Under the pieces are notes generated by a model. The model worked only from the letters and a program-made list of their open reading frames with translations, made no database searches and was not told the DNA's origin. The translations under genes and the position numbers were made by a program. From assembly GCF_003704095.1 (NCBI RefSeq), contig NW_020845603.1, positions 1 to 64,000 of the forward strand: a DNA stretch of 64,000 bases, in the 5' to 3' direction. Every line of letters starts with the position of its first letter. Positions within the stretch are counted from its first letter, which is position 1. Below, one piece after another: positions 23,466 to 39,570 of the stretch. This DNA is from Pocillopora damicornis. Lineage: Eukaryota.

Positions 23466-24488
23466 CTACTGAATAGATGCTTCTTCTAACCTAGTAGCTA
23501 CAGAGTCTGTATCGCTCGTATCTCCAGCCTGTTCAGCAGATTCCTCTGAGGTCTGTGTGGTGTCATTGGTTGCCAGTTCTGTTGAGGACTGCTCACTTTC
23601 GGGTTGGTTTTCAGTGTTACCTCCTTTATCAGTTGCTATGGGGTCTAAAGTTGGAGTAGGAGCGGTTGGATTTAATCTCGATGTGGCTGGAATGCGGATT
23701 CCAGCGACACCTTTGCTCTCGACATCCTTCTTATCTCGTTTGATTCTTCGCCTTCTACCAGGTTCATTCTTACGTGTTTGAAACATATTTTCAAAGTCGA
23801 TTACATACAGAAACCCAGCGATTAGTAAAGTACAAGATCTCTGTCCACTCTTAAAAGATTTTTCTAATTCAGGAGATGTTTTCTCGTCATAAGACCACCA
23901 TCCATTACGACCCTCGTAATACCAAACAAACTCGTCCGCGTCATTTTCGTCGCAAGATTTCTCTTTCGATTTCGCAGCTTTTTCCTCCTTATTAACTTCT
24001 TCTACAACTTTGATAAGCGTTGGATTCTCCAGGTAGTCTACGCTGAGAGAATGACGGCATAGAGCGCACCGTTTACTCCGCAAAATGACTCCTTTGATGC
24101 ACAAGAAGCAGAAAATGTGTCCGCATGGAAGTTTTACAGGATAAAAACAAGACTGTAAACAAACTGAACAATCAGGGTTGTGATCCATCTCTTCGATCGT
24201 TTGAATCACTACATCTTCGGAAAAACCTAAAAACAATCAAAATTTTATTACATTTTTGAGTTGCAGGAGTCATTTATCAAACGTTCTGTTTAAAGGCAAT
24301 CATTACAGAAAGCAGTTTGTTTTCAAAAATATGGTGGCCACTTTGTGAGCAGCTGCCTCGCACGCGGAATAATCGAACTCAGTTGAAAAGTAAAATCACC
24401 TACCCTCGGTCGATGGCTTTTCTGTCTCCTCTAATAAAATTGAAGATTCTGTGCGGTTTTCAGCCGAATTAACGGTCGCTTCAGCCAT
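23466..24488 (-). CDS. RNF146: E3 ubiquitin ligase RNF146/Iduna (RING + WWE), 281 aa; exons 24488-24404, 24226-23466
   Basis: C3HC4 RING (CSVC...LPCGHIFCFLCIKG...CALCR) and WWE domain (WYYEGRNGWW.YD...IAGFLYVIDFENM.Q.R...RRRIKRD); phase-1 GT-AG intron joining an ATG exon MAEATVNS. Confidence 0.93.
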
Positions 24489-25824: not shown

Positions 25825-27224
25825 GATTTCATTTGAAGAAAAAAGATGGGAAGAGCATAATATATTTATAGCACAGCACTGACTGCAGCTGTAAAATGAT
25901 TAAATGAAAATGCTGACGATAAACAAACTTGCTTTAACATAATAGCCTTTCTTTCAAATTTCTAGTTAATCTTGTTTGGCAATCGTTATTTAGCTGCAAG
26001 AAAACAGTGTCAGCGACAACGCTAGATTTATGACGTTTGTTGAAACAGGTTCTGTTTTCAATTTTACGCGTTTCACCAACAGTTTGCGTCGTAAAATGGA
26101 AAAAAAAAAAAACGTTAGGCAAATGTAACGACGCAAGAACTAGACTTCCTGTTGTTCTTGATGTAACCGATCCCTTTAGAATGGTGGATCGCACCTGCGA
26201 ACCGCATGCCTGTTTCCCATTTCCACTGCACGATTATCTTGCTGCCTGCGCCATTAGGTTTCATGATTTCGCCTTCGTTTGGCCTTACTTTCGCTTTGCA
26301 CGATGTGGTACAGGTGAATTGTAAATATTCAAATTCCGTCAAAACTTTGAAACCATACAAGCTGTTTTGATTAAAGGCGCTTAAACGCAATAAAGCCAGT
26401 TATTTTTTTGTGGCAGATTATGGAGTGGATATTAGATGAATATGCAAAAACATCAAGTACTTATCGCCAACAAAAACAGCCGCCCCATTTGACAGTACTC
26501 TTATTACATGATAAATTATCATGTCAACATGACATCATTCACGACGACAGTCGATATACGAAAATCCGAACGCCAGTCAAAAGAAGTATTATCCTTTTAT
26601 GTTGCAAAAGGGTTTAAGTTACTGCAACAAAGTTTTCGCGTCGCTTGCACGAATCTTCGTTTGAGCAACTTTGCGGGATCGATCTTTTAAGTCCTCGTTT
26701 CAAATTCCGTACAATCGGTTTTTCTTCATCATTCTCTATTGCTCCGAATTAAGTTTTCAATTTGCAGTGTACTCAATCATTTGAAATGATAAATCCTGTT
26801 TTATCTGATGTTAAGGAACTGTGAAAACAAGGTAGATAGAAAAAACGCGTAAAGGTTGTCATCGCGCGCGTTGTCGATGCTCGAGTCCTCGTTGCTCGCA
26901 CGCTGACCACTTCGGTTCATATACTCTGCGGCATTACAAGAAATTCTCACGAAGCGTTAGCAGCTTTTCACAAAGGAAACGGCACAGCTGGGAAAAATAG
27001 CTGTTAAAATGCTTTAGTTTTTCGCCGCCCGTCGCTTGGGACTTAAGGTGAATCGTGGTGTTGTTTAAATCAATAACATTTTTCGTTCGATAGCGTGGTT
27101 TAGTAAAATGTCACTTCTACAGACGCTGTGCTGTGGTTGGCAGACTTTCCACCAAAAGCAGATGAGTTAAACGATCCCCAGCGTGTTGTATGTTCACTTC
27201 GAGCGCAAATGGATATCAACACCC

Positions 27225-28031
27225 ATGGAAATGGAAAAATCATTGAACTCCAGTCGAAATTTTAAACTTCCACCGATTCAAGGCGCTGTTCCGGCGGCGA
27301 GTATTCTTCGGCAACCACCAAGGCCAACTTGGCAACAAGATCAAGCGCGAGCCAATGCGGTTGCCTTGCCGAATCATGGCGCATCAGTTAAACCACGAGC
27401 AGTAATTCACATCCCGAAGGATCCATTCCCAGGACGATACAGAAGTCCTCATATTAGTCACAACATATCGAGTGTATCGACACAGAGACTCGCTTCAAAT
27501 GCAGCGATCGACGAGAAATACGGCGATTCGAAGTTAGATTTTGCACCGCGCCGACATCAGCTTCCGCAGTCGTACTCTGTTCTACCTCCGATTCAGAAAC
27601 TCAAAGAGCCAGTCGATAGAGGAAGGCAGGTAACTGCGGCACAAGACAGAACTTCTCGCGGGGAAAAAGAGAACAACAATTTAAATGTTACTAATAAACC
27701 AATTGGGGATAATAGCTCGCAAAGTGATAATCAAAAAAGCGATGACCCGCGAAAAGTTGGCAACAGTAATGGCAAAAACGGCGACAAAAATTGTTCCCGC
27801 GTTGAAGCGGGAAAAGACTCGTCTTCCAGAAAGAAACAGAAAACAGACAATCAGGATAACGAGACTGGAGAAAGAAAACAGAGCCCTACGACGCTGTTGT
27901 TTTTAAAGGGAAAACGTAAAGGTCGAAGGGTCGGCGTTTGTGTGGAAAATGAACCGGCTTTAATCAACATAACTGAACAGCTAAAAGAAATCTTTCTTCG
28001 CAGAAATATGGAAGAAATGTACCTAATTTAG
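27225..28031 (+). CDS. Uncharacterised intronless protein A (268 aa): two LPPI motifs, low-complexity linker, C-terminal PKI-like pseudosubstrate and NES-like helix
   Basis: Long ORF from the first ATG at 27225. Shares KLPPI, P.SY.VLPPI and the C-terminal ~45 aa with the ORF at 36498-37385, which supports coding status. The function call is motif-based inference. Confidence 0.8.
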   Translation: MEMEKSLNSSRNFKLPPIQGAVPAASILRQPPRPTWQQDQARANAVALPNHGASVKPRAVIHIPKDPFPGRYRSPHISHNISSVSTQRLASNAAIDEKYGDSKLDFAPRRHQLPQSYSVLPPIQKLKEPVDRGRQVTAAQDRTSRGEKENNNLNVTNKPIGDNSSQSDNQKSDDPRKVGNSNGKNGDKNCSRVEAGKDSSSRKKQKTDNQDNETGERKQSPTTLLFLKGKRKGRRVGVCVENEPALINITEQLKEIFLRRNMEEMYLI

Positions 28032-31000
28032 CAGTGTGCACTTGACAACCGAGTTTCAAATGGGCAGGTGTAAGTTTAATTTCGTGAAAGCTGTATTTGT
28101 TTACAGTTTAACGCAGCAGTGAGGACAGGATCTAAATTCACTCTAAGAGTAGTGAAAATCGGTCGAGAAAAACATCCTACCGGTCACGTTTCTTGCATCA
28201 TAGGCCGTGTGAAACGTGAAAGTTTTCAAAGCCTTTGCTTCGTCGCATCTCGGTTATTTTCTGTCTTTCACACTGATTAAAAAGTCAAAAGCTTGGGATT
28301 ACCATAACAACTGATGAAAATTTCGACAATTTTGAGTCTCCTTTGCCAGCTTATTTATTACGTTTTTCCATCTGTGGGTTCGCTCTCTGGTCATGAATTG
28401 AAAAAAGGTTCGAGGATTTTCCTTGATGATGGAAAAACTATGCAAAACAAATTGAAGCGATTACAAATCGTACTCAAAGAAGGAAAAGAACATTTCCTAT
28501 TTAAATAGATCCAATAACATTTTACCGCTTACATATGGTTTTACTTCTCTTAACTTACCAAGCAAATAGACGAAATCTATGCCGGTTGAAGCGTTGAAAT
28601 AGATTGACACTGAATTAATCTTTTTTGGTTAAAGGCGCTTTATTGAAGGAAAAATGTCTTAGGGAAAGGTGAATTAGTGCTATAATGACACCGAACTTGG
28701 CTAAATGTTACTTGAAACGATGAAGCTTTCGGACTCAAATATAACTCAGATATAAAAGAAGTATCACGTCTGCAAGACTAAAAGCTTAGTCATATTTATT
28801 CATAGAATTGCGACAAACTTTTGGAAACATTTGCAAATAGACTATTTAAACCTGTGAATTCGCTTCCGAAGATTAACTTCAATTGGTTTCCATTTTAAAA
28901 TTTTTGTAACATAAAACTTTTAATGTTTTTAAGAATCCATGATGTTAATATGTAAATAAAATGTGAACCTCAACTTCTCTGGTTCCCATGGCAGTCGAAA
29001 TTCTGATTAACAGCGTTCCTGAGAATTAGAAAGAATTCTTAGCCTTTCCGGTAAATGGGGTAACTGTCTATCGTCTGAGGACTGATGTGAAAAATTTCAC
29101 CCTGGTTGGCGAGCTCCGGTTTTGATCTTCACTTTAATCTTTTACAGATGATGGAAAAAGATTTGAAGAACATGTTATTCTACAAGTTTATAAAAGCACT
29201 AGGTCACTTCTTGACCAAAAAAAAAACCTATTTTAGCCTAAAATTTCGAATAGGTACCGATTTTTCTGTAATCGTTTGAAATGAAAGCTTGAGAGTAATG
29301 AAATGTCGCAAATATGATTAAATGCATCATTTTCACAACGAATGGCTAATACCAAAATCTGTTATCTAGCAACAGAGACAATTCTACTTACAAGAGCTAA
29401 AATAACCCTATTCTTCAGTAAAAACCAATTTATGGAACCTCAAAAGATATGAAATAAAAATGTCTAACAGACTTACACGAGGGTTGTTACCCCATAGCAG
29501 TGAATGTCGGTGATAGCGAAAAATAGTAGAAAAGAATATTGGTGAAACATTGTCGTCGATTTGCTTTCGTTTACATCATCGTAAGAGGGTTTCAATTAGG
29601 TATACCGTTAACTGTAAAACGGCAGAAAAATTTAGCCGTTAGGCGTAACGATTGATAAGTCGTAGAAAAGGTGAAAGGTGGAAATAGTTTTTTTAATCGC
29701 AAAGGAAAGAATATTAAGAGTTACATTTAAGAGCCATCACTGCATTGAGACTTCTTGAAACGAATAGGGATCGAATGATGAAAAAAGTGTTTATTTCAGA
29801 TATGGTGCCAGTTGCCATCAAAATCAACACTTTTTTTATCTTAATTTTTAATGAGAAATCTTTTTTGCCCTTTCTGGCGTGAAAACTGTGATTGGCTCCT
29901 TGTTATTCTCCACAGCTGCTTGCAAGCCATGTATCCTGAGAAGTAGAATGAAGCTGAAATCAGCAATTAGAAGTTCGGAAATTCTATAGTTTTGTGGCGC
30001 AAAAAAAGGAAGACATATGTTCCATCTTTTCGAGCAGCCGTTTTGTTTTGTTTTGCTGTAAAAACAACGGAAGTGNNNNNNNNNNNNNNNNNNNNNNNNN
30101 NNNNNNNNNNNNNNNNNNNNNNNNNNNNNNNNNNNNNNNNNNNNNNNNNNNNNNNNNNNNNNNNNNNNNNNNNNNNNNNNNNNNNNNNNNNNNNNNNNNN
30201 NNNNNNNNNNNNNNNNNNNNNNNNNNNNNNNNNNNNNNNNNNNNNNNNNNNNNNNNNNNNNNNNNNNNNNNNNNNNNNNNNNNNNNNNNNNNNNNNNNNN
30301 NNNNNNNNNNNNNNNNNNNNNNNNNNNNNNNNNNNNNNNNNNNNNNNNNNNNNNNNNNNNNNNNAGGCAATAAACACTTACCTTAGGTTACTTAGGTTCT
30401 CTGACTCCCCTGTCTTGCGTCACTCTTGTGTTTTCTAGCATTTTCTTACTTGACACCTACTAACAAAATAGCATTTAACATGCCCCTTGTACTTCCCTGT
30501 ACCCCTGTGTACAGAAATTAACTAATTACGTGGGATGCCTGTGGCAGACCACGTAAAAAAATTCGCTAGAGAGTGGTCGTAGTAGTCAGATATGGAAATT
30601 AGCCACGTGTTTGAGCTTCTCACTGAAGTGAAGCCTTGTTGGCTGGGGTTTCTAATTGGAGCAACGCTATTTGCGCGAACAAAATCGATTGACGAAATTT
30701 GCTCTAGATTTTGTTTGGCTTGTTTGCCTCGTAGGCAGTAAAATATGGGATCTGAAAAAGTGTTTTTGCCGAAGACAGGGAACATACACTGAAAAGGCAA
30801 TCTTCGCCGTTTTGCACTAAGGCAACGTTCAGTAACACGTACCTTCGCAGTCTTTGTGATAGTTTTTTTTTTAAAGATCACTGAGCAGGTTAGACTGATC
30901 GAAATTTCAATCTTCACTTATTACCGAACTATTTAAAGCCTAATGCGGTTCCTGTGTAATTTACACTCTATGTAAATGATTTTTTTTGTCCGTTCCAGTC

Positions 31001-31605
31001 GTTTGAGCACCTGGCTTATGGTTTTCGTTCCCCCTTTCTTCCCAGATTCTCCATACCGTTTTCCAAACGTTTGCTACAGTACTGACAAGGAGAATTTGTT
31101 TAACAATAAAGAGCTTCTACGGTCGGTGGTCATTTTCTTTATTCTCGTGACCGTAATGTTTGATTCAGGAGGGATAAGGTAAGGAGAAATTAGATGCTGG
31201 TCGCAGTTACGAGTTTTAGGGTTAAGTAAGCTGTCAGAAGTAAATGAATTGAGCGACGTTCCAACCGTTTGCCAACGGGATCTCTGTAGCTTAGTTATAA
31301 TGTGTCAGACCAGGAAATCCAGAGGTCCGATCCTCATGGAAGACTCAGGCATTTTCTTTGCCATATGTTGGTGCAAAATGATAACACCGTTCTTTAATTA
31401 AGTGATATTCCTATAAATTTTGCAAACGAACTCTTTGGAAAACGTTTTTAACGTGGTGCATATAGGTTAAGAGTGTACCTTGAAGTTGTCGTGTTCGCCA
31501 TTGTTCGACTGACTTTCTCTGCAGACTTTCTCTATTGTGAGCAGTTGCGGTTTGAGTTGAGGTTGGAATTGGGGTTTGGGGTTTGGGTTAGGCTTTTGGT
31601 TTAGG

Positions 31606-32574
31606 CTAGGACGAGGGCAAATGTGATGGAACAACGAAAGTGGTAAGTTGTGTCGAGAGCAGATTTCCTTTCGATGATCTTTTGCGAATGAGGTGCCTCA
31701 ATGTAGCTTTTAAATGAGTATTGCTGTATCCATACACGAAGGGGTTCACAACAGAATTTAAGAAAACCGAGATGCTTAAAAACTGATACACAGGTGCTGT
31801 CCAACGAGGCCAATCCAGCTCAGAATTGTACTGCGTTTTCAACCTAAGGCTGAGTCCTAAAATAGGCAGCCACCACTCACCAAAGTAAGATAACAAAAGA
31901 AAAACTGTAATAAGCTGCTTGGAAGCCTTTTTAGCTCGGCTATTCGTAGCTAAATTCGCAGGACTAACCCTTGTGTGGCTAATCTGTTTACGGTGACGCC
32001 AGGAGAGTTTTAAGATACAACCGTAAATACTGAGCATCACAAGTAAAGGTGCACAGTAATTCAGCAAAAATAGCGGGATAAACAGGTCTATCGGCAGAAA
32101 ATGAAAGCAGGATGAATGCTTCTGAATTTGTGACCTCTGAAAAGTGTCAGCAGCAAAGACAAAGGCTGATGAACCAAAGGAATATAACCACAGTAATAGA
32201 GCTGTTATCCAGACAGTCTTATCATGAATCATGTTGAAGCGGAATGGGTAAATGATCCGAAGAAAACGAGCCACAGACACACTGCAGAAACTTAAAATTG
32301 AAGCAGAGGCTGTCACTAGATAAGCAAATGTTCTTAATTTGCATCCGAGCACGCCATATTTCCAAGTTCCTGAGATCAGATGTTGGAGATGAAAAGGCAC
32401 AACCACAAGAGGAAACAGGATATCTGATACAGCGAGGCTTACCATGAATGGATTGACTGCTTTTCGAATCTCGCGTGAGAAAGTGAAGAGCAGAATAAAA
32501 CCGCCGTTAATGACCACGCTGCCGAGAATAAGAACGATGTAAATACAAGCCGTCGTGTAATGATACCACTCCAT
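31606..32574 (-). CDS. Intronless rhodopsin-like (class A) orphan GPCR, 322 aa
   Basis: Seven hydrophobic segments; TM1 IN, TM2 SLAVSD, W.YG..GC, TM3 SVARF (DRY variant), TM5 P...Y, TM6 WLP, TM7 NS.VNPFVY. Confidence 0.9.
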   Translation of the reverse strand: MEWYHYTTACIYIVLILGSVVINGGFILLFTFSREIRKAVNPFMVSLAVSDILFPLVVVPFHLQHLISGTWKYGVLGCKLRTFAYLVTASASILSFCSVSVARFLRIIYPFRFNMIHDKTVWITALLLWLYSFGSSAFVFAADTFQRSQIQKHSSCFHFLPIDLFIPLFLLNYCAPLLVMLSIYGCILKLSWRHRKQISHTRVSPANLATNSRAKKASKQLITVFLLLSYFGEWWLPILGLSLRLKTQYNSELDWPRWTAPVYQFLSISVFLNSVVNPFVYGYSNTHLKATLRHLIRKRSSKGNLLSTQLTTFVVPSHLPSS

Positions 32575-33484
32575 CGTAGGCGAGTATTACAGTTTGAGAG
32601 CTGGTCCGATGTTTCTCAATTTCCTGAAGTTAACATCTCTCGCTGGAGGCTGCTGTAGATGGAGGAATCAGGTAACTTAACCAAAATACTCCAGCCCCCT
32701 CAGGCGATAAAAAATGACAGGCCCTTAATATGATATAAATACATGTTGGTTTACCATGTGCACCACTGTTTATAACTCAGTAAACGTCAATTTATTTTTT
32801 TATGTATTCGTGAATCGCAACTCAGTGTGACTCAGGCTAACACATCCTCTTTTACTTTTGTGTTAAAATGGAACAATTTTTGTTATCTGTAGTGCGGGGA
32901 GAATAACATTTATAGTTTTTTCAAAAAGTTGTCACTGACCTTTTCTTATTCTAATCGACAAAGTAACCGAAAAAAACTGCCACTTTATGACATTGTGGAC
33001 AACGAAACTCAAGCAGCGAAATCGGCATGAAAACGTGAACTGAGCAAGGTCATTCCAAGAAGCTTAAAGTTTGCACTCCAAAGCTGGGTTTTTCATCCTA
33101 TTAGAGAAGGATTACTTAATTTAACTACTTGTTTCAACATTAAGATTTGTTACCTTCATGTAGGTTGCGAACTTACCTCTTGAATTGAGCTTCGAAGTGA
33201 GGCTGACCTGTGAGCATGCAAAGTTTCACAATCTCGTCGTCTTAAAAATTCGTTTGCCGCAACAGCTTCCTAAATAATATACCTATCCTTCTAGTGAGGT
33301 TGCAGCTTGCAGGCTGAGCGGAGATTATGGACAAAGAAATCATTTCACGGGCAAGGGATGTTTTTGAAAATTTGGATCGGATCCATCCTTCAGATTTTCC
33401 GTTAATAGTTCTAGGTCGATCGAATGTATTCTTGAAGCTAATTTATTCACACAACATTTATAGTAACGTCTCCAGCTTTAAGAC

Positions 33485-33634
33485 CAGGTCCCGGTTTTTC
33501 GAAGGTTGGATAACGCTATCAGCTGAATAAATCTCTATCCGGTGGATAATTTAGCATGTTTTGATATCATTTATCTGCTGGATAGCGATTTATCCGTTGG
33601 ATAACGCTATCCGACCTTTATACAATTAGGCCCA
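33485..33634. mobile_element. Palindromic MITE-like element (ggataacgctatcc repeats)
   Basis: Imperfect inverted ends with internal repeats ttggataacgctatc / ggatagcgatttatcc. Confidence 0.6.
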
Positions 33635-34149
33635 GAAGAAAAATCTGTGGTCATTTAATTTTCTCGGGCGATAAACAAAATATTAAAAAAAATGACACTT
33701 TCGCTACAAACGGAACATCACATTGTGTTCGGTTCCGACAGATGGCGATCGACGAAAAGGGTATTCTGACCAAAACGTTGCCTGTTTTTGTCGCGTTTGA
33801 ATGAAATTAGTGGAGGTTGTGAAAAGATAGTATCAGCCTCTGAATCGTTTCGAAGTAATTTAAAGTTCTTAAGAATAATAGATTTAACTACGTGGTTGAG
33901 AGGGTGAAATGTGGGAGTGAATGGAGTGCGATCAGTATTTTCCTTCTGAGCCGTTTGTGGTGCTGACTGTCGATCAATTTGTTGGGCGCGGTGGTGGCCC
34001 GCTTGAACGACATAAACAAGATAGCCACGTTTATTTAAAAATTAGCACATTACCTCTAATTTTCCGGAAAAATTAGAGTCGTCACTACATAAACGACAAA
34101 GTCTGAGAAACTGTGAAAAAAGTATGGAATTCTTGACGTGTGATCAGAT

Positions 34150-35050
34150 GCAAAGATGAGTACAACAAGTAACTAAGTGAATCTGTAGGTTTGTAGTAAA
34201 CACTAGTGCATAGACCGTTGCCTTGTCTAAAAAAGCCAAAAAAGTGCCGGGAAATTTCCAGGTATATTTCAGAGCCGGGTGAAAGGAATTGACGGCGGTT
34301 TTAAATTGAGTGAGCTCCTCTCTGGTAGAGGAGGTATAGTGCCGATGCAGTCATCAATGAGCGACCGTAGAGTTCAGGTTTGGGGCCGTTGTATTGACCA
34401 AAAAACTGGTGTTTAATAAAATCTACGAAAAGATTGGTGGAGCTGGGTCCCATTTTAGTACCCATGGCTACACCATTAGTTTGTTTGTAGTAGCTGCCAA
34501 CGAATGAAAAGCAATTGAGCGTTAGGACTGGTTCGGCTAGACAGAGTAGTGTTTCAGAGCTAGATTCCTTGATAGTGCGTTGATCAGAAAAAAGGTTTGA
34601 GGGCCTGGAGACCTTTGTCATTGGGAATGACAGTATAAAGAGATGTAACATCCATAGTGAAAATAAGTTTGTTTTGGCCAAGGAAATTTAAGTCGCGAAA
34701 AATCGCCAAACAAGCACGCATCCAAACCAGTCGCTAGATAATTTAATCTCTATAATCACTCTAAACAGCATATGGCAGTGTGTAGCCTTTCCCTACATCT
34801 AGGCAGTTCGGAAAGCCGCAAAACTCGAGAACAAATTTATCTTTAAAATCGACACTCTTGATCCTCACGGTATCGCTTTAAAAAGACATTTACAACCCAT
34901 AATTCCTCCGACCACTCTGACTAAGGGCTAACGCTTTTTAAAGAAACTATGTAATTTAGCATTATCAACTGAGTTGATAACGTAAATTGGCCACCGTAAA
35001 GAGTTTAAAAGCTGACGTTTCGAGCGTTAGTCCTTTCGTCAGAGTGATTG
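34150..35050 (-). mobile_element. Rearranged Penelope-like retroelement remnant (RT fragment on -, GIY-YIG tail on +, hammerhead cores)
   Basis: Minus ORF 34301-34681 contains VLTLNCFSF...YYKQTNGVAMGTKMGP, typical of PLE RT, with frameshifts around it. Plus strand ~34810-34875 resembles a frameshifted PLE endonuclease C-terminus (..KFIFKIDTLDPHGI). Boundaries approximate. Confidence 0.8.
35008..35045 (-). ncRNA. Minimal hammerhead ribozyme-like motif associated with Penelope-like element
   Basis: Minus strand ctCTGACGAaaggactaacgctcGAAAcGTCagc has the CUGANGA and GAAA cores and a GUC triplet; stem II is imperfect. Confidence 0.6.
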
Positions 35051-36497
35051 GATCCGATCTTTATCGGCTTAAAAAATAGCAGTTACATTGTTTATTTTTT
35101 TTAAGACATTCAAAAAGCTCTTAAAGAATCCTTCGAAATGTCTAGGATTTTTTGAGAATTTTCCTTACGAGCTCTAAGTGATTTTAACCAAGGCAATAAC
35201 CTGAACATTCTCATGAAAAAACTGAAGGAAAATGTCGGATGCAAGGGAATTTTCTCAAAATTGAAATGCAAACTTTTAAACTTGAGAACTGGCATTTGAA
35301 AATAGGAAACTTTGACAATCAAACGTACTTAGATTACTTCAAATTTCTTATGCGAAGATGTTTAACGCACCGTAAGAAACACCGATTCCTAATCTGAAAA
35401 CGTGCAGTTTTAAATGTCAGAACTGACGTTTAAAAACTTCGATTTTAAAACTAAAAAAGTTAAGTTTTCAGCGTAAGAACTGACATTGGAAAATACAAAC
35501 ACTTAGCATTACAAATGTCCCGTCGCTTAAGACTTTATGAAAGTAAAGCTGCATTGATATCGAGGCAAATTAATTATAACTGAATTAAATTTAGCGATTG
35601 ATTGGCAAAACTACAACCCGACGTGTGGATACGTCAATCACTGATTTTCCCTAGTTAAATGGTATGTCACAATTGAGAAAGAGAAATTATTAGCGCAGGT
35701 TGAAAATTTGAATTATTTTTTTTCCTTTTGTCTTATTTTTAATTTGTCTGTTTCAGAAAAATCTTTCCGTCGGAAATTCATTAAGTGGAATAGCATAAAC
35801 CTTTTCCGCATAAATTTATCTTAGATAAGATCGATAGAATCTTAGCGCATTTAAGATCAAAACGTAGGAGTTTGTGTATGGTTTCGTATTCAGTATTTTC
35901 AGCATACATGGCTCGAAATAAAATAAAATTGACTGCCATTAAACAGTGAATAATTCATGATTTGCGGTCGTTCTTAGAGGCAGTAAATTTATGTAGAGAA
36001 TCAAGACTAGTCAAACACTAGACTTACTCGTGATCCTTCGCCTAATCTTGCTTTAAATGTGAAATCGATCCTTGCTGACTTATCTAAAATTTAAAGTAGT
36101 AACCACCCTCCAAAGACATTATTGTATTAAAAAATCGATGCTGAACTTAAATTATGTCGAACTTCCCCTACCGACGAAATCGACTAAGTTTCCAAACAGG
36201 TCAAATCTTTTTATACTTGTCAATGTGTTTTCCCCACCTAGAAACCACATAAAAATTTTCGACTTACAGCTGAAATACAGGGACCGGAGGTAAACATTTT
36301 AATGGAAAACAAGACCAACAAATTATCCTTCACGTAAATAAAAAAGCTAAGTGTCATTATTTAGGTCAGTTCATAACAAAACTGATTTATTTTTTTCTTT
36401 TAATTTCCAAAAACATCTCACCCATTTAACTTCGTCAATCCAACAGCAGAATTCCTGCTGGTAAATCTATTTACAATTTTTTTGGCTTTGAACATTT

Positions 36498-37385
36498 TCA
36501 CCATAACATGCAGAGTTCCTCCATTGTTTGGCGAAGTAAATTATCTCGAATTATATCGACAGCTTTTTTCAACGATGGATCAATCTCGACACACAGTGCA
36601 ACTCGCCGAGCGCTTTGCTTACTTGCCAGGAATTCAACAGCCTCTTTACTCAGCTCTAGTCTTTCCAATTCATGCACAACCTCACACGATGTAACTTCAA
36701 CATCTTCGTTAGAAACGCTCGGCAATGTCTCCTCGTGATTATAATGATCCCCCTGTTTTTCAGGAACTGCACCAAACGTTTCCATAGTAGGCCGTTCGAT
36801 TCGACTCTCGAACGTTCCTTGTGTGTCGTTACCATGGTCTTGTCTTGTAGCGTTATTTCTCGCTGTAATCCGTTGGTTTTCGGCGAGTCTAGTTTTCGAT
36901 GAAGGAGACAGTCCGCTGTCTGAGCGTTTTCTCTGTAATGAACTTCTCCTCGGACCGTTTATTTTGTCTTGGTCGGATTTTAAGATACTCCGAGAAGTAT
37001 GCCACACATTTGTCTGTCCAATAGGAGGAAGAACTTTGTAAGAATTCGGATAATTGGTCGGTGCTTTCTCTACGTGTTTTACTGTAAGGCGAGGACTCTT
37101 CGTTTTCTGTGGTCGTGGTACTGTTCCATTCGTGGTTTTCGAATTCTGAGCCTTGAGAATTTTTGGGAAAGATGTATTCCCGTTTGTGTTTGATGTCGTA
37201 GAAATCGTTGACGAATTTCCTATGCTTCGACCAACGAGAAGTTCATTTTTTATAATTGGCGGTAATTTTACCGCTCGGCTGTTTAGATCAAATTGCGGGA
37301 AACTTCTCGGATAAGACTGGAATTCGGCTTCCTGTTTCGCCGGCCTTGAGGCACGAATTTGCCGCCCTGAGTATAAATGCGCCAT
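36498..37385 (-). CDS. Uncharacterised intronless protein B (295 aa), paralog of protein A
   Basis: ORF from ATG 37385. VKLPPI, PNSYKVLPPI and EFLASKQSARRVALCVEIDPSL...LRQTMEELCMLW align without gaps to the protein A C-terminus. Confidence 0.8.
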   Translation of the reverse strand: MAHLYSGRQIRASRPAKQEAEFQSYPRSFPQFDLNSRAVKLPPIIKNELLVGRSIGNSSTISTTSNTNGNTSFPKILKAQNSKTTNGTVPRPQKTKSPRLTVKHVEKAPTNYPNSYKVLPPIGQTNVWHTSRSILKSDQDKINGPRRSSLQRKRSDSGLSPSSKTRLAENQRITARNNATRQDHGNDTQGTFESRIERPTMETFGAVPEKQGDHYNHEETLPSVSNEDVEVTSCEVVHELERLELSKEAVEFLASKQSARRVALCVEIDPSLKKAVDIIRDNLLRQTMEELCMLW

Positions 37386-37810
37386 CACTTGATGTTAATG
37401 TAATGTAAATACACTATGCTGACATAACGTTCCCTGATACGCGATCCCAGTCAGCGATCAAACTTCAACGCATCGAACATCAATTTCGTATCTGCCGGAA
37501 TTAACAGCAAGCTACGCAGGTGCTTCGCTGGAAAACTGTATCCTCAGTGCTTTCCGAATTTTAATTGCAAAATACTTGATTCATCTGAAAGAATCAAAGA
37601 TGTCTTTGGCGGAAAAGAAGTGTATCGTCAAGGTAGTGCATATATATATCGGAATCAATACTTTGATGAAGAGGTTTCAAGGATCTTAATGAAAGAAAAT
37701 TTGACATATATGTGGTGAACTGTTCAGTTGACATATATTTAATTTCAGAGCCAGGAAAAAAAAATACCAAAAAATTACAGGTGTTTTCTATCATCCAGCT
37801 CCGGCCTAAC

Positions 37811-37824
37811 GTTGGCATGGTAAC
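37811..37824. promoter_or_regulatory. RFX X-box-like site ~430 bp upstream of gene B
   Basis: GTTGGCATGGTAAC, close to the palindromic RFX consensus GTTGCCATGGCAAC. Confidence 0.45.
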
Positions 37825-39570
37825 GTCGTGTCTATTGGAGAGGTTAAGTGGCAACTCGCTCTTCCTCGGGAGCAATTGTAGAAAGCAGGAACACTTTACC
37901 TTAATGAGTGAAATACATTACCGTAAGCAAATTTAAAAAACGCATTAGCTCAGACATTCGCGTTTGGGTTAAAAATGGTGGTGAAGATGGGAAAAAAAGA
38001 ACACGCTATATTCCTACAGAAAGTTTCCACGAAGCCACTGAAATTACTTTTTTAACTGAAATAACGTTTTTTACTCGGGATGATCTTGATTTAAACTCGG
38101 AAAAAACCGTCGCAAACATAAAGACAATTTGCGCTATGGAAATTGCAACCATATTCTGAGAGGAAGTCATTAAATGGGCAATTTGTAGCTCGGTGTTAAA
38201 CTGGAGTATAGCATCAAAGCCTTGTATTCATTTTCTACTGTTTTATCGATGTTGGTGTTAATTTAGAGAATTTATTAATTCATGTTCAACTTTACTGATG
38301 TTTTAAAGCCGGGATGTGCATGAAATTCAGAGCGTACTTATTCTTAACCCAGTTTAAAATAAATCCTCATAAGTATGCACTTTTGCATGTTTTTCTATTG
38401 CTCAAGCAACTAATTCCGCTCTTTCCCTTTCCTTTTAATTCTCACTTTGCAAAAACAAAAAACAAAAAAAGGAAGAGGGCATTTGTTGATAATTACGTTG
38501 CGATTCAAAACCCATTTGATAGTGAATTTTTTTTTCCCCAAAAGCTTAATGTTGACATGTCAATGGAGATGAGGCCCATTTCCAACCCTTTCGCTCGTCG
38601 TATTGACTCAATAAATAAATAAATTTCGACATTTAGCACGAAAGTGGCTCGACGTTTGAATCCGACATCGCGCCAAAATTGGGTAACCCGACAAGCAGAG
38701 TCGCGCCATCCGAGTCCAACGCGAAGTCTGAATCAAACTCGTGCTTCTGTCGTGCTACAGCCGAACCTACTGCAATTAAGTTCGGCACGGCAGAAGTACG
38801 AGTGACCAGTATATTTCATCTCTTAAGGTCTCTTACTGCTGTGACCGAATTTCCATTTAAGTTTGTTCCATTCTTTATTAACTATTCTGTATGACTAAAA
38901 ATTTAATAAATAAAATAAATAAAACAAACTGAATTATTTTTACATACAGATATGTAAAAATCACGTATACACTTTCCTTACCTATTCCGAGCCACACAGT
39001 AAAATTTTATCAACATAGGTTTTTTTTGGGAAATTTACCGAAGCTCATTTAATGTTACAGTTCTCTAATGAAGTTACAGAGTCTCCAATGAAAATTCAGG
39101 GCAAAGACCGCCAAAAAAACCCTCCCCTTAACATTGTGCGCACAGGTTTTCGAGACATTTTAAAACACCCAGCTATATAACATAGACACGTAAATCTCTG
39201 ATTTAACACCAGTTACACTCGATCAACCTAATTTGACCTAGAGCCTAGTTGGTTTAAAAGTTAATTCTAATATCTACACCATACATTGTATGCGGAATTA
39301 TTGGAAATATTTAACAGTAAGATGACAAAATTGTTTATTAAACCATTACACGAAAGAAAAACTATATTTACAACGAACGTCAGTTTTGACTCAAATTATT
39401 TATATAATTGACTCATTTACTTGCTACTTATACAGTTTATGAACAGTGTTGATCAACATGAAAAAACTCTCCAGGAATGGTATGTTCTTTCGTATCAGGT
39501 CAAATATTACAAATTCAACACCAACACGAGTCCACAAAGCGAACATAAAAGACCTTATTGACATTCTCCT

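Follow-up and report, generated by a model that had tools for sequence, protein, structure and literature searches.

To our knowledge, control of cyclic AMP (cAMP)-dependent protein kinase (PKA) that is itself independent of cAMP is known from a few proteins only, namely PKI, ARHGAP36 and Smoothened. The regulatory (R) subunits of PKA have the inhibitor sites RRGAISAE (RI) and RRVSVCAE (RII). Substrates and inhibitors of the catalytic subunit, PKA-C, follow the consensus R-R-X-S/(A/G)-hydrophobic, and the PKA decoy motif of ARHGAP36 is RRGAV (PMC5059767). The peptide PKI(5-24) contains GRRNAI (PMC6514771), and in PKI the pseudosubstrate is followed by a nuclear export signal (PMC7723848). In Smoothened, an upstream helix and an aromatic residue accompany RR, Ala and Ile; the hallmarks given for this PKI motif are a non-phosphorylatable P site, arginines at P-2 and P-3, a hydrophobic P+1 residue, and the upstream aromatic residue and helix (10.1101/2021.07.05.451193). 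Here we describe two genes, A and B, located in a 64,000-nucleotide stretch of the genome of the coral Pocillopora damicornis (positions 1 to 64,000 of contig NW_020845603.1; the window). An earlier note, made from the letters of this DNA, had read their products as pseudosubstrate inhibitors of PKA-C. The analysis supported the view that A and B are paralogues, this coral's two members of an uncharacterised cnidarian family. We propose, at about an even chance of being right, that this is a new family of disordered adaptor-like proteins whose tail would act as a cAMP-independent decoy substrate of PKA-C.

The two genes are as follows:

27225-28031, plus strand: gene A, a single-exon open reading frame (ORF) of 268 amino acids, frame open
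36498-37385, minus strand: gene B, a single-exon ORF of 295 amino acids, frame open

The earlier note had described A and B as intronless paralogues that are alike only in their ungapped C-termini and in short motifs, and this description held. Transcript-like contigs from a related species were colinear with window positions 26446-28604 without a break, so gene A fits a single exon. Its orthologues begin with MEK, and the ATG at 27231 may be the true start. When A and B were compared by BLASTP, only the last 43 residues aligned, without gaps and with 37% identity (E 1e-8 for the pair); outside the tail their likeness is limited to KLPPI, close to the N-terminus, and Y.VLPPI, in mid-protein. 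No further copy of the family was found in the genome assembly (234,350,878 bases in 4393 contigs). Both ORFs are transcribed, on the evidence of assembled RNA contigs, which report presence and not expression level. Contigs from polyA RNA-Seq of several studies hold the region 27000-28300, and with it gene A, whole, with all or nearly all of the sampled words. For gene B, contig pieces from four libraries of four studies were confined to 36419-37388, a low-level signal limited to the ORF, and no RNA-library contig pieces were found in its flanks (35200-36400 and 37500-38100).

Homology searches identified 38 homologues of B and 44 of A, and when a profile centred on B was run by HMMER exhaustively over 1.84 billion representatives, it returned 44 proteins only, all of them family members with the same layout. 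The family ranges over stony corals, anemones, octocorals and hydrozoans. No member was seen outside Cnidaria, an absence that is unproven, short-motif proteins being hard to detect. Named B-type members include those of Stylophora and Oculina and of the octocorals Dendronephthya (LOC114537698) and Xenia (LOC124450225), named A-type members are found in Nematostella (LOC116603366) and Actinia (LOC116290499), and a third type is that of the hydrozoan Hydractinia (LOC130614384). Members are about 240-450 amino acids long; the closest named relative of B is a hypothetical protein of Stylophora pistillata (77%). Every member is entered in the databases as 'uncharacterized' or 'hypothetical', in agreement with the claim that the family is undescribed, and literature searches for member gene identifiers and for 'LPPI motif' returned nothing relevant, including no reader of LPPI. 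Pfam gave nothing usable for either protein (the match of A to Presenilin, E 3.4, is far under the cut-off). In the ESM Atlas the best match of B (0.80, to CIMIP4/TEX33) was at chance level and the A tail had no usable match, while sequence searches of the PDB with the family profile and the A tail produced noise only, with no PKI or R-subunit chain.

The features of the two proteins on which the comparison with PKA inhibitors turns are listed below:

27264-27278, plus strand: first LPPI motif of A, KLPPI, residues 14-18, invariant in all aligned family members
27573-27593, plus strand: second LPPI motif of A, YSVLPPI, residues 117-123, LPPI invariant across the family
27900-27947, plus strand: pseudosubstrate-type segment of A, FLKGKRKGRRVGVCVE, covered by the family census and modelled in the PKA-C cleft
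27942-28028, plus strand: predicted C-terminal helix of A, residues 240-268, ending LKEIFLRRNMEEMYLI, from the alignment and the predicted structure
37254-37268, minus strand: first LPPI motif of B, KLPPI, residues 40-44, invariant
37020-37040, minus strand: second LPPI motif of B, YKVLPPI, residues 116-122, invariant
36585-36632, minus strand: pseudosubstrate-type segment of B, FLASKQSARRVALCVE, between helices 247-254 and 270-294 of the AlphaFold2 model
36504-36578, minus strand: predicted C-terminal helix of B, residues 270-294, AVDIIRDNLLRQTMEELCML, near-invariant in stony corals, with a per-residue confidence (pLDDT) of 83-86

The two 16-mers FLKGKRKGRRVGVCVE and FLASKQSARRVALCVE are present exactly where they had been reported (27900-27947, and 36632-36585 read along the minus strand). 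Taking P0 as the phospho-acceptor position, the register of A is F226 at P-11, R231 at P-6, R234 and R235 at P-3 and P-2, G237 at P0, V238 at P+1, C239 at P+2 and E241 at P+4; that of B is F252 at P-11, R260 and R261 at P-3 and P-2, A263 at P0, L264 at P+1, C265 at P+2 and E267 at P+4. Both proteins are predicted to be mostly disordered (mean pLDDT 50 for A and 53 for B), with variable middle parts, and helices are predicted in the tails only, at 221-227 and 240-266 in A and at 247-254 and 270-294 in B. In both paralogues the predicted tail is thus a short helix with the P-11 Phe, an extended basic segment and a long C-terminal helix. As the earlier note had it, these are long proteins (268 and 295 amino acids) with the module at the C-terminus, and the spacing between the motif and the end is constant at 31-32 residues. 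The end of the A tail, LKEIFLRRNMEEMYLI, is identical from anemones to corals. Judged by eye, the hydrophobic spacing L258-xxx-M262-xx-M265-x-L267 of A matches the class 1a export-signal pattern, and the corresponding spacing, phi-xxx-phi-xx-phi-x-phi with acidic residues in between (export-type L-xxx-M-xx-M/L-x-L/M), holds in all clades, as in LRRNMEEMYL, LRQTMEELCM and LVQHLEDIWM.

Other assignments of these conserved parts were considered by eye and set aside. The hydrophobic spacing of the C-terminal helix is unsuitable for an A-kinase anchoring protein (AKAP)-type helix, and the conserved residues around LPPI fit none of destruction box, SH3, EVH1, calcineurin or MAPK docking motifs. B-clade proteins end in Cys-aliphatic-aliphatic-Trp; a CaaX box was rejected, this C-a-a-W ending being found in the B clade only and kept in no other.

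A census of the motif was made with 91 distinct 19-mers taken from 136 proteins by a locating pattern that included RR and Cys or Ser at P+2. Retention of RR and of a small P0 residue in orthologues had been set beforehand as a test. RR occupies P-3/P-2 in all 91 motifs, where it was part of the locating pattern, and it is present in every full-length member. P0 is Ala in 61, Gly in 29 and Val in one, and never Ser or Thr. Cys is found at P+2 in 88 of the 91 (the pattern allowed Cys or Ser only) and Glu at P+4 in 76, so the RII-like Cys and Glu pointed out in the earlier note are real and family-wide. P-11 is Phe in 64 motifs, Ile in 9, Tyr in 8, Leu in 4 and His in 3, which makes it hydrophobic or aromatic in about 88 of 91, and P+1 is Val in 32, Thr in 30, Ile in 15 and Lys in 9, Thr and Lys belonging mostly to the B clade. 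In an alignment of 30 sequences from all clades the invariant columns are both LPPI motifs and the Arg-Arg pair. Every aligned A-clade sequence has Arg at P-6 and either Val or Ile at P+1. In hydrozoan members, which also have Val or Ile at P+1, the motif is GRRNAIC or GRRFAIC, the former with the GRRNAI found in PKI. Compared with the published consensus (PMC5059767), the A clade and the hydrozoan members fit fully and so does B of this genome (RRVAL), whereas many B-clade orthologues (RRxATC, RRGAKC) fit only in part. The A clade also matches the hallmarks given for the Smoothened PKI motif. A pattern such as F-x7-RR-x-[AG]-hydrophobic is by itself not rare, at a rough estimate of tens per proteome; since a single match of this kind is insignificant, the case rests on conservation and on the lack of a phosphorylatable residue at P0. 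Genes, transcription, family, motif conservation and predicted architecture can be taken as established.

The earlier note had called the proteins PKI-like. In the sense of descent this did not stand, since, as far as sequence comparison goes, A and B are not members of the PKI family. The PKI profile PF02827 failed to match either of them even at E values up to 10. In a genome-wide search the same profile located a canonical PKI gene, not in the window, at G000:C2336:248721-248921 on the minus strand (L127:1501-1701); this locus scored 49.6 bits (49.4 bits in the genome-wide search) against a cut-off of 25. The coral gene shows, as a side result, that PKI is not restricted to vertebrates. When the A-family profile was compared with coral PKI by hhalign, the probability was 1.6% and only 13 residues aligned, those of A's FLKGKRKGRRVGV, to which the coral PKI 13-mer corresponds in the predicted register. 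The resemblance appears to be one of motif, compatible with convergence, and provides no evidence of homology.

As a motif, the likeness extends over many positions. The PKI sequence quoted in the earlier note agrees with PMC6514771, and like A, PKI has an aromatic P-11 residue on a short helix (predicted in A), Gly at P-4, Arg-Arg at P-3/P-2, a small non-phosphorylatable P0 and a hydrophobic P+1, followed by a helix rich in leucine and spaced like an export signal; the P-6 Arg of PKI is shared with the A clade. The helix/extended/helix arrangement predicted for the tails of A and B is also that of PKI(5-24) and the PKI motif in Smoothened (10.1101/2021.07.05.451193). Unlike PKI, which has about 75 amino acids and an N-terminal inhibitory domain, A and B are three to four times longer and carry the module at the C-terminus, and they have a near-invariant Cys at P+2, Glu at P+4 and two LPPI motifs. 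Furthermore, the family is so far restricted to Cnidaria, where it coexists with canonical PKI. The RI and RII sites resemble A and B in the arrangement RR-x-(A/G/S)-hydrophobic-(S/C)-x-E; P0 is non-phosphorylatable in RI, and A and B have exactly the Cys (P+2) and Glu (P+4) that RII has. At these two positions the coral sequences seem closer to the RII inhibitor sites than to PKI. Pfam detected no domains in A or B, and so neither the cyclic-nucleotide-binding nor the docking/dimerisation domain of R subunits, for which reason any inhibition by A or B would be cAMP-independent. Several A-clade members (RRGGV, RRVGV) resemble the RRGAV of ARHGAP36. In ARHGAP36 and Smoothened, as proposed for A and B, the decoy motif is embedded in a larger protein that is otherwise unrelated. 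For those two proteins, which are unrelated to A and B also in their domains, the motif is proven by experiment, while A and B are candidates from sequence and, for A, from a model of the complex; the cnidarian proteins have no other recognisable domain.

The interaction of the A tail with the kinase was modelled as a complex of PKA-C, ATP, two Mg ions and residues 205-268 of A. The coral PKA-C gene consists of numerous small exons (G000:C413:13000-16031, minus strand, identical to L044) and was found by a degenerate pattern, searches of the genome with PF00433 and PF00069 for PKA-C as one open frame having returned other kinases only. The kinase used was an intact 351-amino-acid PKA-C frame from a marine metatranscriptome contig (L065:182-1234), which aligns along its whole length with mammalian PKA-C alpha (E 6.5e-206), with PKG1 as the next-closest solved kinase. 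It is 88% identical to the coral open-frame pieces that hold six exons, a floor value in which intron read-through is counted. The complex scored 0.88 in all three runs, and the best of three controls reached 0.65. Of 78 solved complexes 51 attained the pass mark, as did 2 of 108 mismatched pairs; a lead of +0.20 over the best control is required. The three runs share at least 59% of their contacts, with a partner pLDDT of at least 51.

In the modelled complex the kinase chain carries its initiator Met, and the usual numbering is one less. The contacts of lowest error place R234 (P-3) at 128, 130 and 171, which are E127, F129 and E170; R235 (P-2) at 169, 171 and 202-204; and G237 (P0) at 167, the catalytic D166, as well as 188 and 201-203. 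V238 (P+1) and C239 (P+2) were modelled on the 198-203 loop (usual numbering 197-202), which contains Cys199, and residues 246-253 of the C-terminal helix of A touch 245-252 of the large lobe of the kinase. E127 and E170 of PKA-C form ion pairs with pseudosubstrate arginines (PMC5059767), and Cys199 adjoins the P+1 residue of the substrate (PMC8146537). The A tail was thus placed by the model in the active-site cleft in substrate register, which supports binding without amounting to a demonstration of it.

From these data we infer an inhibitory mechanism in which the C-terminal helix, the Cys and the LPPI motifs would also have roles. The module consists of a predicted amphipathic short helix with an aromatic or hydrophobic P-11 residue, the extended basic segment R-R-x-(Ala/Gly)-x-Cys-x-Glu and the long conserved C-terminal helix. 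Acting as a decoy substrate, the extended segment would lie in the active-site cleft of free PKA-C: its Arg pair would bind the acidic cleft, Ala or Gly would take the phospho-acceptor site, and the P+1 residue would enter the P+1 pocket. Because the proposed decoy is non-phosphorylatable, it would block the kinase independently of cAMP, in the way of PKI, RI subunits, ARHGAP36 and Smoothened. The C-terminal helix might add contacts to the large lobe, serve as a nuclear export signal, or both, these roles not being exclusive, and the LPPI motifs may recruit a further partner, which would make the protein an adaptor and not a bare inhibitor. The proposal is better supported in the A clade than in the B clade, given the constant P-6 Arg of the aligned A-clade sequences and their P+1 residue, which is Val or Ile throughout.

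A more elaborate version, which we consider improbable, is that the family is a redox-gated trap and adaptor for PKA. In the model, the expected error between the near-invariant P+2 Cys and chain residue 200, which is Cys199 of the activation loop, is within about 1 A. Oxidising conditions are common in symbiotic cnidarians, and in RII the equivalent P+2 residue, Cys97, was reportedly shown by First, Bubis and Taylor in 1988 to be open to cross-linking with Cys199. Under such conditions an intermolecular disulfide between the P+2 Cys and Cys199 might lock PKA-C onto the decoy; the LPPI motifs would then pass the trapped kinase on to another protein, and its nuclear export would be the task of the C-terminal helix.

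Several observations weigh against the proposal that the tail is a PKA-C decoy. The A-tail complex passed narrowly, by +0.23 where +0.20 is required, and a control in which the A tail was kept and the kinase replaced by an unrelated protein scored 0.65, so the tail looks 'sticky' to the model. The model was calibrated without ligands and is untried on peptides or disordered chains, its success here may reflect memorised structures of the much-solved PKA-PKI pair, and the modelled kinase is that of a metatranscriptome contig, not the coral's own PKA-C. The P-11 Phe emphasised in the earlier note is prevalent in the census and lies on a predicted short helix, but F226 fell outside the confident interface of the model. 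The P-6 Arg of A, invariant in its own aligned clade, is absent from the B clade. The hydrophobic P+1, true of A and B here, of the aligned A clade and of the hydrozoans, gives way in many B-clade orthologues to Thr (30 of 91 motifs) or Lys (9 of 91), both disfavoured by PKA. The genome already has a canonical PKI, and no sequence homology of A or B to PKI or to R subunits was detected. The most conserved part of the proteins is the C-terminal helix and not the pseudosubstrate segment, for which reason the main partner may be something else. On balance, the pseudosubstrate reading of the earlier note gained from the conserved motif and from the passing A-tail model and was weakened by the narrow pass, the high control and the B-clade P+1 residues.

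The conservation of the helix leads to an alternative that we find doubtful, namely that the tail is a helix-mediated interaction or trafficking module, in which the likeness of RR-x-A/G to a pseudosubstrate would be incidental. It could be a CRM1 export signal, with the basic cluster serving for nuclear import, or a helix that binds a cnidarian partner. Besides the invariance of LKEIFLRRNMEEMYLI from anemones to corals and the near-invariance of RDNLLRQTMEELCMMW in the B clade, the class 1a spacing seen by eye is consistent with this alternative, as are the resemblance of KGKRKGRR in A to a classical import signal and the 0.65 that the A tail reached with an unrelated protein. However, an import signal leaves unexplained the fixed Ala/Gly, Cys and Glu after RR, a P0 that is never Ser or Thr, the fixed spacing from F to RR, and the presence of RR without a basic cluster in the B clade. 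An export signal, for its part, is compatible with a PKA-C decoy, PKI itself combining a pseudosubstrate with an export signal (PMC7723848).

An unlikely explanation is that the module serves, as pseudosubstrate or docking site, a basophilic kinase other than PKA-C, such as cGMP-dependent kinase (PKG), PRKX or a kinase of the CaMK/AMPK type, and that the B-clade Thr that follows Ala could be an R-x-x-T acceptor. The 30 motifs with Thr at P+1 have R at -3 to that Thr, and PKG1, as the solved kinase next closest to the PKA-C used, implies a similar cleft. The autoinhibitory sites of R subunits and PKG read RRVSVCAE, RRGAISAE and RAQGISAEP, and compared with these sites A/G-[VIT]-C-x-E is as R-subunit-like or PKG-like as it is PKI-like. 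Nonetheless, the combination of RR with a small P0 residue and with Val or Ile in the next position, as found in the A clade and the hydrozoans, is the PKA optimum (PMC5059767), and the aromatic P-11 residue and P-6 Arg are determinants of the PKI type for PKA.

The surroundings of the two genes contain the following features:

23466-24236, minus strand: RING and WWE gene with an RNF146-like layout (WWE E 2.8e-21), upstream of A; also present in L125 and L126
30076-30364: assembly gap, the only place with runs of X, between A and B and inside neither
31606-32574, minus strand: single-exon rhodopsin-family G-protein-coupled receptor (GPCR) gene (PF00001 E 3.3e-33), between A and B

Two other coral assemblies repeat the succession of RING-WWE gene, A (plus strand), GPCR and B (minus strand). 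In one distant assembly 5 kb separate the A orthologue from that of B, which follows downstream on the other strand, and in another the A orthologue is flanked by the WWE gene and the GPCR as it is here. As this order is kept in other corals, the adjacency of A and B is independent of the assembly gap. That A and B are functionless chance ORFs or pseudogenes, as the lack of Pfam domains and the low-complexity disordered middles might suggest, is hardly credible and is refuted by conservation, given full-length orthologues across Cnidaria with conserved ends and motifs, conserved synteny and presence in polyA RNA libraries.

Three further observations concern the region around the genes. A similar GPCR occupies the matching place in another coral assembly (L126:17219-18205). 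Window positions 38142-38800 form a separate stretch covered by RNA contigs from two runs, deeper than B. A long conserved ORF was not recognised there, and the stretch could be untranslated sequence or a repeat. At 34301-34681, on the minus strand, the middle of a 126-amino-acid ORF resembles by eye a reverse-transcriptase fragment of a retroelement; its only Pfam match was weak and unrelated (DUF747, E 0.0024).

Pseudosubstrate inhibition of PKA is a kind of mechanism that is already well known; what is new here is the C-terminal position of the module, the near-invariant P+2 Cys, the LPPI motifs and the coexistence with PKI. The natural variants, with Gly at P0, Cys at P+2 and Thr or Lys at P+1, would be useful for studying pseudosubstrate recognition. 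Should PKA binding prove false, the strong conservation of the C-terminal module and the invariance of both LPPI motifs would still need explaining. In cnidarians, PKA and cAMP act in development, cilia and sperm function, and probably in symbiosis and calcification. If the proposal is true, cnidarians from hydrozoans to stony corals would possess a lineage-specific layer of PKA control beside canonical PKI.

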